A stretch of DNA of 63,028 nucleotides, the filler included, from Platydemus manokwari (taxonomy: Eukaryota), in assembly GCA_037951405.1 (NCBI GenBank). It is 6 parts of 6 records of this genome, joined end to end, with 100 filler letters (N's around TTAATTAATTAA, not from the genome) between each part and the next. Parts side by side here need not be neighbours in the genome. Positions count along the whole stretch, not along the records: positions 33,691 to 45,095 come from JBBMOY010695541.1; 5 more parts are not named here. One strand, written 5' to 3'. Below are positions 33,767-45,095 of this stretch, piece by piece. The translations under genes were made by a program, and so were the position numbers. Every line of letters begins with the position of its first letter. Positions within the stretch are counted from its first letter, which is position 1. The notes beneath the pieces are model-generated. The model had not been told where the DNA came from and ran no database searches. It saw only the letters and a program-made list of their open reading frames with translations.

Positions 33767-35897
33767 ATCTGTAGAACAGGCATGCAATACAAAAGAATAG
33801 AAGCTAGCTATTTAGTCATGGTGATCGTATACTAAAAGAAATGCCGTAACTTTCGGAGTTATACAAATAAATAAATATATTCATATATTGTTAATATAGA
33901 GTTTTTTATGGAAATAGCCTTGTTTCATAAAACCGTGTTAAACGAGATTATAAGTCAATTAAAAAGAGGATAACACTCTGAAAAATAATTAAAAGATTTA
34001 AAAATGCTCTACTCGATTATGCGTCATGTAATACGGATTTTTCTAGGACGGAGACCCGTACATATAATATAGAATTTTTCATCAATTATAATACTAATCA
34101 TGTTAATGAATCATAAAGCTAAATATAAATTTAAAAATAAATAAACTCACAACAACGATTATTCGATAAAAATAATACTTATGAAAATAAATAATAGATA
34201 AAATATTATAAATAATTACATCCAAAGAAAATTTGGTAAAGCTTCATATTCATGCCGAATATAAATTATACAGAATTGTCTTTGATAACAGAAATTTACA
34301 AGAGTTTTATTATGGGGTTTTGGAGTAGAATATAAGTTTTAAAGAAACCTTTGGTTGACAATGAAATTATATTGAAATTGTCTATTATTCGAAAATTAAG
34401 CTTAAGATTTTTCACCGCATAAAGTACTTTATTGACGCTACAAAATAACTGCAAGTTGTTTAAGGAAACATTTCGTTTTTTCGATCATATGTGTTTTTAT
34501 TTGATCTTGAGTTTTCAATATATCTTGTTTTATTTCATGGTGTCAGTTTATAGATTACTGCGTATATAATAACGAACAATACGAATGCAGAGAAGATATT
34601 TGAAAGTTCTGAATATGGCTGGAGTTTGTTATGTTATATCATAATTATGTTTTTATTTTGTATTATGCTGAAGAATTATAAACCTATAAACATAGCCTAT
34701 ACTTATTTATGATTGTTCGCTTTCCCCACATCTAATAAATTCAAATAACACAAGAATATCACAATCATTAAATGTCATAATTTAAATTAAATGATGGTAA
34801 AAACTATGTAGTCAAGTTTGATACAAAATAATATTCTTAAAGATGACATTCAAATTACTGTTATGATCGACTAATACTAATACAACTACTACTGAATAAA
34901 ATTGCTAAAAATATATAAACATTTTAAGCATGATAAGTAAATAGAGAAAACAATCAATGTTTGATTCGATAAAGTTACATTATACGAAGATATGATTTCA
35001 TTCAAAGCATTTATTAAACAATATAATGGAAGAAATATTATATTATCAAACAAAAGCACAAGCTGCAAAGAAAATAAGCGTTACTAAAGCTTGCGCCTAC
35101 ATCGTATATACTAAAAATTAAGCCACCGACACTCATCAAAATGCAATTTTACAAGAACAATTAATACGAACTACGTTCGAAATATATTTCATTTAATAAT
35201 TAATTACAAAATGTATTGAAAGAATTGAAATTATGTCGAATCTAATTCAAAATCCTATATAATCCATGAAAAAATCTGTCACCATCATTAGTGTGGATCT
35301 GTCTTTATTCTATTCAGTATCGAAATTAATATTTTAATAGTTGAAATCACGATCATTTGGCGTTTTTAAAATTTTCGAAATTTCGTTCAGTAATTCGTCG
35401 TTTATAAATTAAGAATTCATTTAGATTTTTACATAAAATTTTTAAGATATTTATTAACATCAAGTTTCGTTTTTTTTATTTACTTAACGAGTACCTTTTC
35501 AATTTCTAACTTCGAATCTATTTTTAATCTCAAATCACCGATTAAGCTTGTGCTTTGTAAATTATAATTCAACGGCTTGTTCTTAAAATACTTGGTTTGA
35601 TTTTCCTCAAATATTTTTAAGAGATGATTCATTTTAACATTCAAATTTAATTTATTTTTCATATTTTATATTCCAAGGATAAAATATGCCTTGGAAACAA
35701 GATAATGTTTATTTTAAAACTTAATTTTTTCCATAAAATTGCATTTTCATGGCCTCTATGTATTTGCATATAAAATATGTATTTGAAAGCGTCTTGTTTT
35801 TTATGCAAAATTTAAACTACCTGGAGATAAGAAATAAATTTCTAAAGGTAGAGTAAACAAAAAAACAGGGATATTTTTATTGGCCATGCTTGCTTAC

Positions 35898-38800
35898 TTT
35901 TCTTTGAGAATTTCAGCGGTGTTGCTTTCTGAGCTGTTTATGGGTTTTTTCAAGTAAGCGAACATTAGATATTTGAGGAATGGTCTCTTAAGATGGTTTG
36001 CTATTTCTGGATGATTTAGGACGTTTAAAATGTCTTCTACTGAAAGAATGGTTTGACATAGGGATTCTATGTATCTGTTTTCTCCCTGATAACATAGTAA
36101 CCAATATTACAAAGAAGATAATATTACTTCAGCACAAGTCGCAAGCAATTCTATTAGACTAATTAGGTATTGTACATGATCTTCGCCGACTTCTTCCTTA
36201 AGCACAGCTTCTCTGTTAAAAATATTTAAATAAAATAATTAACAGTTTTTAAGTTACCTGGTTTCCATTGGTTGTTCAAGAATGTATGCCACACTACTGT
36301 AGCTCTGCATAATATACTTCATGACAAGGGTTTGATTTCTTTTCAATGCCAATCCCATGCCTTCAACTTTTACAATACCGCAAAGAAGATCGAGAAATTC
36401 TGGAGCTCTTTGTTGATGTTCAGCAGCTAAGCTGACGATTTTATGTATTTGTCGAGGTAAAACTTTCAGGCACAAATTTTGATTGTTAACAAATACTTCT
36501 TTCAATGTGATAGCGAGTTCCGATTCGACGAGTTTGACACGCAATAACATATCGAGATTTTCAAACACCTGGTTCTGTACGTCTGGATATTGAAGTGCCA
36601 TCGCTTTTAGAAGTTGCAATGCTTTTCGTAATACTTTCTCGGTTTGGGAGTACTTTTCCTGAAATCATTTGTTAACATATAAAAGTAATCGCAAAGAAAA
36701 AGAAACTAACGGTTAACTGACTGTCGGTTTCGACAGATAGGATTTCCATTATGACACCGATAACATCTAGATAATGAAATTTAGAAAGTAATTCTAGCAT
36801 GATGTTACTGGCTTGATTATATTTATGTTAATAATAAAATGAAATTAAATGATTTAATTAATATAAATGCTCAAGTTATTAATTATTATTATTATCATTA
36901 ATTATTATATTTTAAGACAAGTACTATCGCTGTCAAGAATCCGCTGATTCATCGGGTGAGGCTCTTCTGGAGCTTTTGGCAGATGGCAGAATCTATGACG
37001 GCAAGATAAATTGTCTGCTTATAATTGTAGAATAATTTACTCAATTAATTCCGAAAATATGTTTTCCATTCGACTCACTTGTTCATCTGACCATTTAGAT
37101 TTTGCCATCATTCGTAGTAAAGGTACTTGCTTTGCAACTTCCCGATGTACACAGCATGAATCCGTTGTCATCAATACTAACGATTCAGTGGCTGCTTGGA
37201 ACGTGTCCTGCCTTCCAGAATAGAGAAGATTCAAAACTTCTAACGATAGTTGATTCATTTTAGCATATTTATAATGAGCCAAATTCTGAATTCAAAATTT
37301 TGGTTCAAAATTTTAAATACAGCTCTCTTAAAAAATAGAAAATTTTCAATAAAAATAAAGTATTAAAAATAAAGTGTTAAACCTTATTTTGGGGTATTTG
37401 TAGAAATGAAATTAATTAAATGTGGTCATTTTCATATTTAAATTAAAAATGAAGGCAAATCAGATGGAAATAAATTTTAAATTTAATATTTAAAAACTTG
37501 TTTCAAAATTTATGTATTAAAAATGAAGAAAATTTGGCAACTAATAATTGTGATTTTAATTTAGCATCTAATATGGTAATATAGGTATATTAAATGCTAG
37601 TATTATAATTTGTTCTTAATAAGAAATTCTACTTTCTCCAAAATAATCTAAGCTAATCTTTAAAATACCTACTTAAAATGAAATATCAAATAACAGCTCA
37701 GCCGCTTACTTACATCCAATAGATAATTAATTTAACCAATCTTACTATTAAAATATTTGTCATTTGATCAATCTTCACATGAGTTGTGTTTTCAAACATT
37801 TCCTTGAGTTCTTTAATCATTAATTTCTGTTTACGTAATGAAGTTCTAAATAAATCATTTGAAATAACAGATGCGTTGAAAAAGTGTTTTTACGGCTTTT
37901 TTTCGTATGGCTGAAATCCCTCATATAAAGCAGGTGCTAAATAGCTTGGGTTTTTCTTCTTTATCAATCCTTCATTCCTTTCACATTCTTTGAATTTTGC
38001 CATGAATCCCTAATGGTTTTTAATAATTATTCATTTATTTTAAATTAAGAAAATATCATTCCAACCGCCAATCTAGCATTAGATTCAAAATTTAAAATCA
38101 TCTGAAGAACTTCCAGAGCAGCATATTTAGCATTGACGATAGCACTTGTTTCCTTCGATTGTAAATATCTGTCGCCTTGTTGATATTTTTGGACAATTTT
38201 CTTCTTTTCTTTGGATAATTCTAAAATTAAGAAATTTAAATAATGATCATTTTTAAAAATAATTATACCTATTATTGTAAAATGATATTTACTATTATTA
38301 TTATTATTACTATTACTATAATAATAATTATTATTATTATTTCGCCATTTAATTAATTTTAGATTAAGGATTCTATCGATGAGATTCAAAATAATGATTA
38401 ATTAAATTTAGCAATACTTCTCTTTAAATGATCTTAAGAGCAATCTTTTAATATAATAAGAAACATCTCATTTTAAAAATAAATCGAAAAAGAAGTACCT
38501 TTCCCTTGTCTCTCTGGAGGAAACGGTAAGTCTCTGCTACCATCTATCAGTCCAATAAGCTTGTCTAACAAATTTCTAACATCATCAACATCACCATAGT
38601 AGCCGAACTTTACGAGAAAATTCAGCAATCTCAGAACTTGCTCGATGAGCATATTGTGTTCAATTTTCGAAGCAATCATGAAGGTATTTTCATCTAAGAA
38701 AGCTCCAATCCAATCCCGTAAGGCCGGAAAAATGGTAACCAAATCCTTGGCAGCCTGAGAAAAATTGTTATGATATTTTAAAAACTCTAAATGATGTGAT

Positions 38801-41800
38801 AAAAATAAATGATGTTTTAAAGTATGAGTGAATCCATTTAGATAATATTTTGCGTTAGAAATTGTTGATTTATTTGTTTCATTATATGATCATTTGTCAT
38901 TTTATTTACAATTTCACAGTCAGATTATAGTATAATTAAAATAACGAATATATAAATTAAACCTGTTCTTCTATTTCCTCTATTTATTTGATACTAGAAT
39001 TATTTTTATTTATACTATCATTTGAATATATATATTTGTCAATATTGAATTCATCATACTGTGATTTTCTTGAAGGTGGGTTGAAGGACACGTCTCTCAA
39101 TTCCATTTCATTTTGCTTTATAACTTCACATAAGTTGCCCTTTCTATGAAGTTATAAAGCAAAAGGAAGTGGAATTAAGAGAGAGGAACAGTTCAATTAA
39201 CAGACTATCATAAACGTTAAAAAACTACTCATGCAAGCTGTATTTACTTTTGAAAAACTGTATTGAAAGTAAATATAACTACTAAACACTAAACGTAAAA
39301 GAACACACTCATTAGATTAAGTGTGTCAATCTGTCAGCAAAATCTGCCATCATTTTATTTTATTTTTTGCTTGATTCAAAGCTAAAATTGATTAATATAG
39401 ACGAAATAAATTATTATTGCTTTAATATCAATTATAATTTACAGCACTATTTGTTACCATGGAGATTTTATTCGATGTTAGTATTGTTAATTTCCTTTTA
39501 ATGTTTTCTTTGTTTTTGTACTTCAAAATAAACTTTATCTTTGATAATATATTAAAATAAAAATTGTTATCCATTATTAAAGTAACAATAACTCGCTGCA
39601 ATGTTGAATGTCATAATTAATTCTTAGGGCTAACTAAATTGTATATCTGAATAAAAAATAATGTCTTTCATGGGGACATTTTAAAAAATATTAGTTTGGT
39701 GATGCATTGGATCCTTTATTTATATTTTGAAGAAAAAATTCTTTTACAAATTGATAAATCAATACGAACTTCTGTCGTAAAGTCATTTTCAATACATTTA
39801 TTTTCATTTATAAAGAACCTTACGTGATGAAAAATATTTAAAAATTTTATATAATTGAAAAGGGAGTATTATTAATAAAATTTTCAAATATTTTCATATA
39901 TTAATAGATCACAAAATAATGACTCACATATTGATCAGATGTCGTAGTTTTATTTTGATCTTTAGTACCAACATATTCGTAAACAAAGCTTCTTTCAGGG
40001 TGATCAACAACGGAATAGTTATTACCAACATCGACGAAAAGACCTGAAATTACAAGGTGTAAATAAATAGCCATTTTATTTCTTTAACCTATAATCATTT
40101 CGCAGTATTTAGCCCTAACGTCATCGGGGAGAATTTCCGATTGAAGAGATAGAAATCCTTCTTCCCATGAAAGATAGCTTAAATCTTTAGTAATCAGTCT
40201 GATACAATATTCATTTCGACCCTGTTTATTTGATACAGATTTCCATAGTATAATTTGTCAAAGAAAACTTACATAGCAAATAGCGTTGAATAAATCTAGC
40301 TGGGCCAATAGAAATTGAACTTTTTCTTCATCGTAACCTGGATAATCAACCTGAATAATAATATAATTCAGTAGTATTAATACTTAATTAACTTAAGGAT
40401 TACTTGGAGAAACTTATGTAATGCCGTCCATGATTTCATGCAATCAGTACTAACGTATAAAATATTAGGTTGTTCATGAATATTTTGTCCTCTTTCAGTT
40501 AGATATACTCCTCTCTAGAAATTATAGATTTAACAAATAGCTTCATTAATTTTTACGATTAAATATATTTGAATAATATTTACCCTATCTTCTAATAGCC
40601 ATCGTTGAGCTATATAAGTTTGATTATCAACTATTCCAACTCCATTACAAACACAAAGAACTTTTAATAGCTCCAAATATCGGTAATTCTGAATTTGTGA
40701 TCAATAAATCTATCACTCAATTTATATTAATATTAACTTCATTTGTTCTTAGGGCTTCTACAAATTGGTTGATTTGAACTTTACTAATTCTGTCTACAAT
40801 TTTACGATTGTCTCTAATCAGTTCAACAATTAGTTGAACTACTTTGAGACTTATTTCAGACTTAAGTGAAAATATATAATGACTAATTAATATATAACCA
40901 GTTTACCTTGTCCAACATTTGTGATTCAAATAACTCAATGTATTTTGCAAAATATAATGCATTTTTTCTACTAGACCCAATCATGTATGTATACAATATA
41001 TCATAGCACTCCAAATGAACTTTGAGAAAATTTGCTTCATCTGGTTGACCACACAAAGGCATGTTTAATAATTTTACCAAAAGATCAATTACCTAAATTA
41101 TTTATTATAAATGAGTACATTTTAAATTAACTTACGCGTAAATTTCTTAAGAGCTTTTGTCTAGCTTTAACGGATTTTCCATTTACCATCATAAAATCTT
41201 TTATTTCTCTGAAAGCCATACAAACCCGATATGCTTCTTTAGCATGTAAAAATTTTTCTTTCAATCTCTATTTATAAAAAATATTTTTTAATTTAAAAAA
41301 TAATTAATAATTTAATTTAATATATTAAATTAAAATTTGAATTTAAAATTAATAAGTGGGATTTAATTACAATAAATATTTGATTTAATCTAAACTTCAA
41401 TTTCAACTTTTATTTTCATATGTGTTATTATATAATACTGTATATGCCAAATTAATAATTTTTCAAGGTCACTTTAAGAAATTTTGTTTGTTTAAATACT
41501 TGTTTACACTAAACACTTTTATTTTGAAAATTTATTCCACGAAGGATGCTGATTTACAAAGACATAATATCAGGTATAAATTTATTTATCATATACTTCT
41601 TAAATAATGATTTTAGGTGATGAAATAAGCAGTGATTCATATCCAATGAAGCTTGTAGATGATATTGTGTATGAATTTGAAGGAAAAAATATCACTATCA
41701 GAAATGGAATTCCTGATGAAGCTATCGGTGGTAATAAATCGGCGGATGCCTTTGACGAAGAAGTATGTGACGGTACTGAAACACAAATCGATATTGTGTA

Positions 41801-42504
41801 TGCTAATAGATTGGTTGAAACTGCTTATACCAAGAAAGAATTTACAACCTACATCAAAGTTGATTAATTTCATTATTAATTATACTTAATTGTGGATTAG
41901 GATTACATGAAAAGGATTTTAGAAGTTCTTAAAACTAAAAATGCTGATCGAGTGGAAGTATTTAAAACTAAGGCTCAAAAATATGTGGCCGAAGTTTTAA
42001 AAAATTTCAAGGAATATAAATTTTATACAGGCGAAACAATGAATCCCGAAGCGATGGTAATTTTATGTAATTATAGGGAGGATCAAATCACTCCTTATTT
42101 CATCGTTTTTAAAGATGGAGTGGAAGAAGAAAAATGCGTAAGTTTAATGATGAATAATTCTAATTTTAGTAACTTGCTTTTGCATTTTAGTAGGCGCACT
42201 CGCCATTGGAATGTTATATTAATAAAGAATTGATGACTCACATCTTCTAATAAATTTCTTATAAACGGTACAATGCCAGCGATAAAGTTAAATGGTCGAT
42301 AATATTCTCCATAAACTTTTTGAATTGTATAAGCATCGTCGTATCTTCTGTCATGGACACAGTCGACCTATTTAAACATTAAGACAACTATGCTTTCATT
42401 TGTAGAATATAAAACCTTTCTGAGTTCACCACCGTCCCATCGTATAGCATGCATTGATCTTTCATCCTCAGTGGTGCTGAATTGTTGTCTTTTATATTCT
42501 TTGT
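35898..42504 (-). CDS. Divergent inositol 1,4,5-trisphosphate receptor-like channel, internal portion covering both RIH domains; exons in transcript order 42416-42504, 42242-42367, 41136-41267, 40907-41092, 40738-40860, 40584-40688, 40404-40514, 40273-40350, 40089-40221, 39928-40043, 38499-38754, 38066-38220, 37894-38009, 37746-37845, 37041-37285, 36925-36992, 36711-36766, 36258-36658, 36128-36212, 35898-36085
   Basis: All listed exons join in frame at GT-AG junctions. IP3R-like motifs: KARQKLLRNLRVIDLL, SRKNALYFAK, ELIRDNRKIVDRI, RYLELLKVLCVCNGVGIVDNQ, QLDLFNAICYGRN, VRAKYCEMIIGLFVD, LVKFGYY, EVFVNNQNLCLKV, FLDLLCGIVKVEG...KRNQTLVM, YLISLIELLATCAEGENRYIESLCQTIL. The N-terminal and pore exons are not in this contig. 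Confidence 0.9.
39093..39182. other. Intronic inverted repeat / long stem-loop (36-bp arms, 18-nt spacer)
   Basis: The arm at 39093-39128 (TCTCTCAATTCCATTTCATTTTGCTTTATAACTTCA) matches the reverse complement of 39147-39182 (TCTCTTAATTCCACTTCCTTTTGCTTTATAACTTCA) at 33 of 36 positions. Confidence 0.85.
41546..42193 (+). CDS. TPT1: Translationally controlled tumour protein (TCTP), complete, 169 aa; exons 41546-41573, 41617-41858, 41901-42137, 42191-42193 (stop codon only)
   Basis: MLIYKDIISG / DEISSDSYPMKLVDDIVYEFEGK...IGGNKSA...DIVYANRLVET..TKKEFTTYIK / DYMKRI...YKFYTGETMNPEAMVILCNYREDQITPYFIVFKDGVEEEKC / TAG. Both TCTP signature regions are present. Introns are 43, 42 and 53 nt, all GT-AG. 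Confidence 0.97.
42221..42226 (+). promoter_or_regulatory. Probable TCTP polyadenylation signal AATAAA (second AATAAA at 42249-42254)
   Basis: Canonical hexamer beginning 28 nt after the TCTP stop codon. Confidence 0.6.
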
Positions 42505-44929
42505 CTATAAAAACCTCGAGATTAAGTAAACGATCCTTTATTGAAATTTTAGTACTTTAAATAATAGAATTATTGGTTATCATTAGAATTAAAGTTAATC
42601 ATGTGATGATTGTTAAAAATTTGTAACTATTTTACCGATATAATGTATTTGACATTATAAAGTTATACATTTGAATAAAATTTAGATATTTATTAACATA
42701 AGTTGTTTGTTTAATTCAAATGATTAATAAACCGTCGAACATGATTCATTACGAAATGTCTACAATTGAAGTTACAGAGTAAAAACTTTATCAATAATCA
42801 TTTGGATATTGTTTTTTAAATCAAAACAGAAGTCAATCAATTTATTTGTATAATCAAAACTTGTTTTGGCTTATTTTCTCCATTTAAATCCAGTTGATGT
42901 ATTGATTCTAGTGCATATCGTGTTTCAAATTTTAAACACCAGGGTTGAAGTACAATCGATAATAATTTGTTCATGAATATCATACAACCGCTATAATTGA
43001 CATAAATAATCAAAATACCGTTCGAAAAATAAAATTAGAAATCAGTTTCAACCGAACTTCGCAAATATTTATCCATTCCAACAATTGAAATTAATATATC
43101 AAAGATAATTTTGTTGAGCAATCAAAATCAATTGGTGGTTTTTTAATCAATAATTGAATTGATCAGTTTTATATTTTATTATGTTTTTAAAATTTATAAA
43201 CTTGGCATTTTATATAATCTTTTCTATGATACTAACTCAAATTTTCAATAAAAAGTAGAAATTATTGGAATTGAGTGAATAAACGGAAAGAAATTCAAAT
43301 ACTTCTTGTTATCGGGAAAATTATAAATTAAAAAAAATTGTTAACGCAAAAGACCAAAATTTTCTCAGAGATTATCTATATTACAACTTTTATCTTCCCT
43401 GAATTATCTGAAATGACTATATATGGAAATCAATCAGGAAATTGAATATATTTTCTGCGATTTATTTTGAAATTTGATAACTTTTTCTAACGAAAATTTT
43501 GAAAATATTCTTTTATGAAAATTATAATATTTTCCGTTTCTTAAAATGAAAGTTAATTATATTTAACTAATTTTATGAAAATGTAAAATTACAACTAAAA
43601 TTGATAATTTTTTTATATTTTAAAAGATTAATTAATTCCAATTATTATTTCTATTTTAAGATTCAATTTTGTATTATAAGCACTTTCTCCGTTGAAGTTG
43701 GCTAAAGTTAAAATTTGTGATTTCTGGATTAATTGGCAACAAAATAATCCATTTACAACTGTAGATCGCTTCTATAAGCTATAAAATTTTGCTAATAAAT
43801 AAATGTTGACAGATTTTTTAAGAAATATTTTTAAAATCTAGCTTGAAGTTTGTATCCTTGATACATAATTTTAATAAACTAATTATAAACAATTTAGTTA
43901 GTAAATATTATGTTTTCAACAAAATAAAAAATTTAAGTAATCGCTAGAATTTTCTTTCTTAAATTCTTTCTTGTTTAGATTCTAAATTGATAAATTAAAC
44001 TTCTTTGATAATAAAATATGAAATAATTATGAAAGAAATAAAATGAAAGTTGTTTGAAATAAAGAAAATTTTAAATTATTTCAGTCAGTCATTTTTATAA
44101 ATAAGACAAACAAACAAATTTCATGTTCGAATTAGAAATTATGTTCAAAATTAAAATTTCTAAAAGATCTTCATTGTTGTAATATGATATCTGCTAAGTG
44201 AAATTTATTTCAATTTCAAATGATTTGATTGTTGCGAATGAAATAGCATAAAATTTCATTAATATATTTAGATAAACTTTGCAAAAAATACTCAACAATT
44301 CTTCATCTAATCGCTTTAAACAATCGTTAATTGAAAAAAAATGATATTGAATTCAAATTTCAGTTGTCAAAATTGTCTCTAAGTTATCAGTAACTATCTT
44401 CTAATAATGTCAGAATTTATGGGATGACTTGAATTCCCCAATTGACGATAAAATCACTATATTTAGATTATTTTAATTAATACTGTTCACACAACTGATT
44501 AATATTTTAATTATTATTTTCAGACCAATTATCTTTTCAGAAATTGTATTTCAATTATAGAAAGTCAAATTTATAATAATATTTCCTTATGAGTATAATT
44601 TCCAATTCTTTGCTTTCAGCAATGTTTGAACTCTTCATTTCATATTGTTTCATTCTGGTTTCAGCAATTTATGAAATGATTCTGGGAAACTCTAAATATA
44701 AAACTTTTAATTTCCAAATGGAGTAAATTGTTTGTTTGTGGTTTTATCAAGAATGGAAATTTTAATCTCCATAATATAATCGAAGTATCATAAAACGTAT
44801 GTAATAGGTTACTTCAACTCGGAATTGTGATATCACATAAATTTTTGAACTCTACTTTCATATATAAAAGGAAATAACAAGCTTTGTATTATTGTGCGTG
44901 GCTATCTATGTGACTAATTAATGCACATT

Positions 44930-45095
44930 ATAAAAATAATTAATAATTATTATTTAATATTATTATTTATTATTATTAATATTAATATCATTATTATTTA
45001 TTATTATTTATATTATTATTATTTATTATTATTATTATTATTTATTATTATTATTATTATTTATTATTATTATCATTTTTTATTATAATAATCAT
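44930..45095. repeat. Degenerate (ATT)n low-complexity tract
   Basis: Seen directly at the contig end. Confidence 0.9.

Follow-up and report, generated by a model that had tools for sequence, protein, structure and literature searches.

The window, a stretch of 63,028 nt (filler included) from the Platydemus manokwari assembly GCA_037951405.1, joins six parts of that genome, of which positions 33,691–45,095 represent contig JBBMOY010695541.1. On this contig, a complete TCTP gene on the plus strand (41546–42193) most likely lies, in antisense orientation, wholly inside one intron (41268..42241) of an IP3 receptor (IP3R)-family gene on the minus strand. Coordinates, reading frame, splice sites and homology agree in placing the whole TCTP coding unit inside this IP3R-like intron, as in the original prediction. 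The arrangement is best explained, with considerable confidence, as an ordinary antisense nested pair, in which a native and intact four-exon TCTP gene would occupy a pre-existing, positionally ancient IP3R intron of a compact, AT-rich metazoan genome.

The host intron that holds the whole TCTP unit is 974 nt long, lies in phase 0 and is bounded by GTGAGT and AAATAG. At the junction, GAT is followed by GTGAGT on the donor side and AAATAG by AGA on the acceptor side, and the host frame is kept across the 974 nt. The upstream exon (42242..42367, minus strand), which ends in ...L-E-D, aligns to the IP3R of Pomacea up to residue 424, and the downstream exon (41136..41267, minus strand) aligns to the same protein from residue 427 (local tblastn; residues 396–424 at 42328–42242 and 427–445 at 41210–41154). 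Residues 163–247 and 245–284 of the P0003 IP3R fall on the same two exons. Because no host residues are missing across the intron, no host exon is expected inside it. These alignments show the flanking exons to be consecutive IP3R segments of one gene, joined in frame by consensus splice sites at a predicted junction, and the in-frame splicing of 42242–42367 to 41136–41267 proposed earlier is upheld as a prediction (consecutive residues, phase 0, GTGAGT/AAATAG). The identity of the two exons rests on local alignment to full-length IP3Rs; searches of solved structures in the PDB with these two short exons alone gave no match.

That the nesting is an artefact of assembly, or that the two flanking exons come from different IP3R-like genes, is extremely improbable. 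The contig is only 11.4 kb long and ends in microsatellites, (ATA)25 at 33691–33766 and approximately 46 copies of (ATT) at 44939–45086, such trinucleotide arrays being typical break points of short-read assemblies; moreover, no N-terminal IP3R exons were found upstream. Against an artefact stands the junction itself, where the exons are consecutive in the protein alignment, in phase and bounded by the consensus GTGAGT/AAATAG, with nothing duplicated. Searches for direct or inverted repeats, target-site duplications and transposon-like repeats around the TCTP unit found none. The two genes also share their composition and intron regime, with a coding GC content of 0.325 and third-position GC content (GC3) of 0.271 in TCTP and of 0.341 and 0.265 in the host, and with introns of 42–53 nt in TCTP versus 43–69 nt for nine host mini-introns. 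The contig piece as a whole (33691–45095) is very AT-rich (16–37% GC per 400-nt window, about 25% overall); this composition, together with the ~50-nt introns and genes of invertebrate type, sets it apart from human DNA. Among Logan contigs, all sampled words of 40800–42700 are present in run X2, a DNA-like run that may be the assembly's own source, and 9% of the sampled words in run X1, possibly an RNA run of another organism.

The TCTP gene comprises 169 codons (510 nt in the computed spliced frame) with no internal stop, interrupted by three GT..AG introns, all on the plus strand. Exon 1 (41546..41573) carries the ATG and encodes MLIYKDIIS plus 1 nt before the donor GTATAA of intron 1 (41574..41616, 43 nt, GTATAA..TTTTAG). 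Exon 2 (41617..41858) is followed by intron 2 (41859..41900, 42 nt, GTTGAT..GATTAG), and exon 3 (41901..42137) ends in ...EEEKC. Intron 3 (42138..42190, 53 nt, GTAAGT..TTTTAG) begins immediately 3′ of the last sense codon, and its retention would extend the open reading frame (ORF) by 30 codons; the last exon (42191..42241) contributes only the stop codon TAG at 42191–42193 and a short 3′ untranslated region (UTR). Searched exon by exon, the gene matches the Pfam profile PF00838 (length 164, cut-off 24.3 bits) at positions 8–89 with exon 2 (E-value of 3.2e-20, 73.5 bits) and at positions 90–164 with exon 3 (E-value of 6.7e-29, 101.7 bits), so that together they cover profile positions 8–164 of 164, far above the cut-off. 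PROSITE-type patterns for TCTP signature motifs 1 and 2, a weak test, match at 41724 and 42006. The predicted protein resembles the TCTP/TPT1/fortilin family in its full-length domain, its typical length (169 aa), its N-terminal MLIYKD..., its C-terminal ...EKC and both signature motifs. No difference from the family is apparent at the protein level; what is unusual is the genomic location alone.

The 5′ flank of the gene (41268..41545, plus strand) is 278 nt long with 15% GC, in agreement with the earlier estimate that at most ~280 nt would be available for a TCTP promoter and 5′ UTR. It contains TATATA, a TATA-like motif, at 41429 and, upstream of the ATG at 41546, a TGA stop in frame (41525–41527), and its first ~40 nt double as the 3′ end of the host intron on the opposite strand. 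Separately, two 19-nt stretches on the plus strand, at 41619–41637 (start of exon 2) and 42086–42104 (near the end of exon 3), are 95% complementary; they could form a long-range stem in the mRNA or could arise by chance, for which a rough estimate in 1.5 kb of AT-rich sequence is 0.05–0.1.

By these features the TCTP gene is intact, with no signs of decay. The nested copy might instead be a second, redundant or silent paralogue, with the main TCTP gene elsewhere in the genome, which would fit the observation that nested genes often arise when short young duplicates insert into long introns (PMC5174743). This is unlikely given the intact ORF, strong full-profile Pfam scores, consensus splice sites, upstream in-frame stop and poly(A) signal, together with a codon composition that matches that of the host. 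Nor is the gene a retrocopy, because its three introns are kept.

On the minus strand, open segments joined by GT..AG introns encode a protein of the IP3R family, as judged by homology and reading frame. Colinear tblastn alignments with the IP3Rs of Pomacea and Tubulanus and with P0003 extend from 42520 (Pomacea residue 348) to 35897 (residue 1303). The most upstream exon detected, 42416..42535, matches the N-terminal IP3R hidden Markov model (HMM) with an E-value of 9e-8 and is separated from 42242–42367 by a 48-nt intron. Downstream of the TCTP-bearing intron and exon 41136..41267, a 43-nt mini-intron (41135–41093) leads to a series of short exons at 41092–40907, 40860–40738, 40688–40584, 40514–40404, 40350–40273, 40221–40089 and 40043–39928, of which the first six are followed by introns of 46, 49, 69, 53, 51 and 45 nt, respectively. 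The last adjoins a second long intron (38755..39927, 1173 nt, GTGAGT..TCTCAG, 23% GC), in which no recognisable coding sequence was seen by eye on either strand. The exons beyond it (35897..38754) align to Pomacea IP3R residues ~752–1303 and to solved IP3R1–3 at ~1220–1337, and include the exon that encodes the RIH domain (36658–36257; Pfam PF01365, E-value of 2e-8). No further IP3R exons were detected by tblastn downstream, at 33691–35896; the remaining host exons are either separated by very long introns (over 2 kb) or located beyond the ends of the contig.

The RIH exon identifies the family most directly. Its 10 matches among solved structures are all to IP3R1, IP3R2 or IP3R3 (residues ~1220–1337), and its best full-length matches in a library of 1.84 billion representative proteins are the annotated IP3Rs of Pomacea, Patella, Tubulanus, Saccoglossus and Branchiostoma (41–56% identity). 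Compared with known IP3Rs (IP3R1–3 and invertebrate proteins), the host shares the RIH domain, matches IP3Rs only among solved structures, and is 30–63% similar, and colinear, to mollusc, nemertean and hemichordate IP3Rs over about 950 residues. The contig carries only the middle of the gene, the N-terminal ligand-binding β-trefoils and the channel domain not being seen on it; its end at 33691 falls short of the gene part for RIH_assoc and the six-helix channel domain. On this homology the host is an IP3-receptor-family gene rather than RyR, with putative IP3 binding and channel function. Assignment of the host to an 'IP3R-B'-type channel was considered and dropped, since the taxa seen do not fit those of PMC9113742.

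The neighbouring host introns had been described as only ~43–70 nt. This holds for the two adjacent introns (48 and 43 nt) and for seven more (45–69 nt), but the same gene also contains introns of 1173, about 460 and 278 nt, all free of TCTP. Given these, and the contig ends of >2 kb in which no IP3R coding sequence is recognisable, the 974-nt intron is no size outlier for its host; subtracting the ~700-nt TCTP unit leaves about 280 nt. The 278-nt host intron carries a (TTA)18 array at 38289–38341.

The arrangement was then compared across IP3R loci. The comparison set comprised 89 related loci (455 kb), scanned in six-frame translation with the TCTP signature patterns, and the TCTP gene of the window was recovered as a positive control. 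A profile-guided scan of JGI metagenomes with an alignment had yielded 80 IP3R loci, an earlier scan with a single exon none. No credible TCTP signature was found with these patterns in any of the 89 loci. The homologous intron holds no TCTP gene or motif, nor room for one, in L003/L004, L006 (by annotation), L007, L018, L068, L071, L079 and Pomacea. In L003/L004, L007, L018, L068, L071 and L079, about 100–660 nt separate the alignments that flank the junction, and these gaps are too small for TCTP because unaligned host residues also fall within them; a larger gap occurs only in L079 and is filled by the next IP3R exon. In L003, a metagenomic relative, the homologous exons are 248 nt apart, and L003, L071, L079 and L068 have ~250–480 nt at the homologous intron position. 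The annotations of Tubulanus polymorphus (L006) and Saccoglossus (L007) show no gene inside the IP3R gene, and the IP3R gene of Pomacea encloses two small genes, both lacking a TCTP domain. Conservation of the nesting in related genomes, the check proposed with the original prediction, was not borne out: TCTP was seen in none of the 89 loci scanned, nor at the homologous intron of the distant relatives that span the junction.

The position of the host intron, in turn, appears to recur. In L003, L071 and L079 the upstream-exon alignment stops at the same residue as in the window, and in L068 a GTAAGT-type read-through follows directly after that residue. The pattern points to an old intron position, entered by TCTP within the lineage of the window. 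The relatives that span the junction are distant (at most ~60% identity in the RIH exon). The best IP3R relatives, from molluscs, a nemertean and one UniParc entry, are 44–56% identical, and the closest relatives of the RIH exon (67–71% identity) are short environmental contigs of <1 kb: L008/L009 (groundwater and other metagenomes), L010, L075, L077 and L078. The source organism may accordingly come from a group of small invertebrates that has been poorly sampled. In human, fly and C. elegans, TCTP and IP3R genes are located on different chromosomes. From the loci compared, the TCTP/IP3R pairing is probably lineage-specific. As a separate observation, an IP3R segment of the GC-rich (50%) locus L079 (2448–2612; ...FMVVNGEPNKQRQKLLRNLRIVELLVKLL...) forms one exon; as the segment is undivided, the mini-intron position 41135–41093 is not common to L079.

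The 3′ end of the TCTP gene lies very close to the host exon. An AATAAA at 42221–42226 begins 28 nt after the TCTP stop and ends 15 nt short of the host exon, whose edge is at 42242; another AATAAA (42249–42254) falls inside exon 42242–42367. Given the usual cleavage distance, TCTP transcripts would probably end right next to the host 5′ splice site, across it or within the exon. In the nested pair proposed here, a small promoter of its own within the AT-rich 278-nt flank would drive TCTP transcription, splicing would remove the three mini-introns, and polyadenylation would take place at or just past the AATAAA at 42221. The host polymerase would read through TCTP in antisense, and the spliceosome would remove the antisense copy together with the 974-nt intron. 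Because the TCTP introns are retained, the gene would have reached this site through DNA-level relocation or duplication rather than by retroposition. No functional link between the two genes is needed, and the only likely interaction would be generic transcriptional or 3′-end interference, since TCTP would end right against the host 5′ splice site.

Two observations weigh against this account. No IP3R exons were detected upstream, at 42560–45095, by tblastn or with the N-terminal IP3R HMM, which leaves the full host model putative. TCTP is evolutionarily ancient and normally expressed at very high levels; because it differs in this from a typical nested gene, strong interference with the host might be expected.

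Nested genes as such are common and account for 9.5% of the genes in D. melanogaster and 2.7% in C. elegans; most lie on the strand opposite to their host, preferentially so if they contain introns (PMC3814207). The typical nested gene of Drosophila is young, evolves fast and has a narrow expression pattern (PMC3814207, PMC5174743), and genes of nested/including pairs show a lower probability of shared expression or function than nearby genes that do not overlap (PMC3814207).

The original prediction had gone further and proposed that a Ca2+/apoptosis regulator sits inside a Ca2+ channel gene where its convergent transcription could interfere, or be co-regulated, with the host. As a selected regulatory coupling, this would mean that convergent antisense TCTP transcription, or an RNA duplex formed across the host 5′ splice site and exon, tunes IP3R expression. 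The poly(A) signal 15 nt from the host exon and the second AATAAA inside it make antisense overlap with the host 5′ splice site plausible, and divergent expression in Drosophila has been taken to indicate transcriptional interference between nested genes (PMC5174743). Against such coupling, TCTP is absent from the homologous intron in seven other junction-spanning IP3R loci, no TCTP signature occurs in any of the 89 related loci, no literature report of TCTP nested in IP3R was found, and for Drosophila nested pairs the likelihood of a common function or expression is reduced rather than raised (PMC3814207). On balance, we regard coupling as decidedly unlikely, and the placement of the regulator for co-regulation or interference as unsupported. 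The more specific version, in which strong antisense TCTP transcription that runs through the host 5′ splice site to the exons upstream of it is a selected arrangement that gates synthesis or splicing of the IP3R pre-mRNA, is very improbable; if true, an anti-apoptotic Ca2+-binding protein and an endoplasmic reticulum Ca2+ release channel would control each other reciprocally in this lineage. The Ca2+/apoptosis theme common to the two genes is a likeness of annotations, not evidence.

An ordinary antisense nested pair would open no new question in Ca2+/apoptosis signalling, because the pairing is not conserved where testable and adjacency is weak evidence of shared function. If transcripts confirm the structure, the locus would provide a clean and very compact case for nested gene versus host interference, in which a normally highly expressed gene would end a few bases from a host 5′ splice site in a genome with usual introns of about 50 nt.

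Among known systems, the LRRTM genes located in α-catenin genes likewise place a protein-coding gene in the intron of an unrelated host. Those pairs have been kept across many vertebrate lineages (PMC3933685), whereas the TCTP/IP3R pair occurs in none of the other IP3R loci examined. Closer in architecture are the nested/including pairs of Drosophila (Lee & Chang 2013, PMC3814207), among them 2mit in an intron of timeless2 (PMC3786989), in which a whole gene with its own introns is also contained in one intron on the opposite strand; like these, the TCTP gene appears to have entered an intron that was already there. It differs from them in that the nested gene is ancient, highly conserved and of housekeeping type, and in the compactness of its setting: in a genome with ~50-nt introns, TCTP fills about 70% of the host intron, and its predicted 3′ end touches the host exon.

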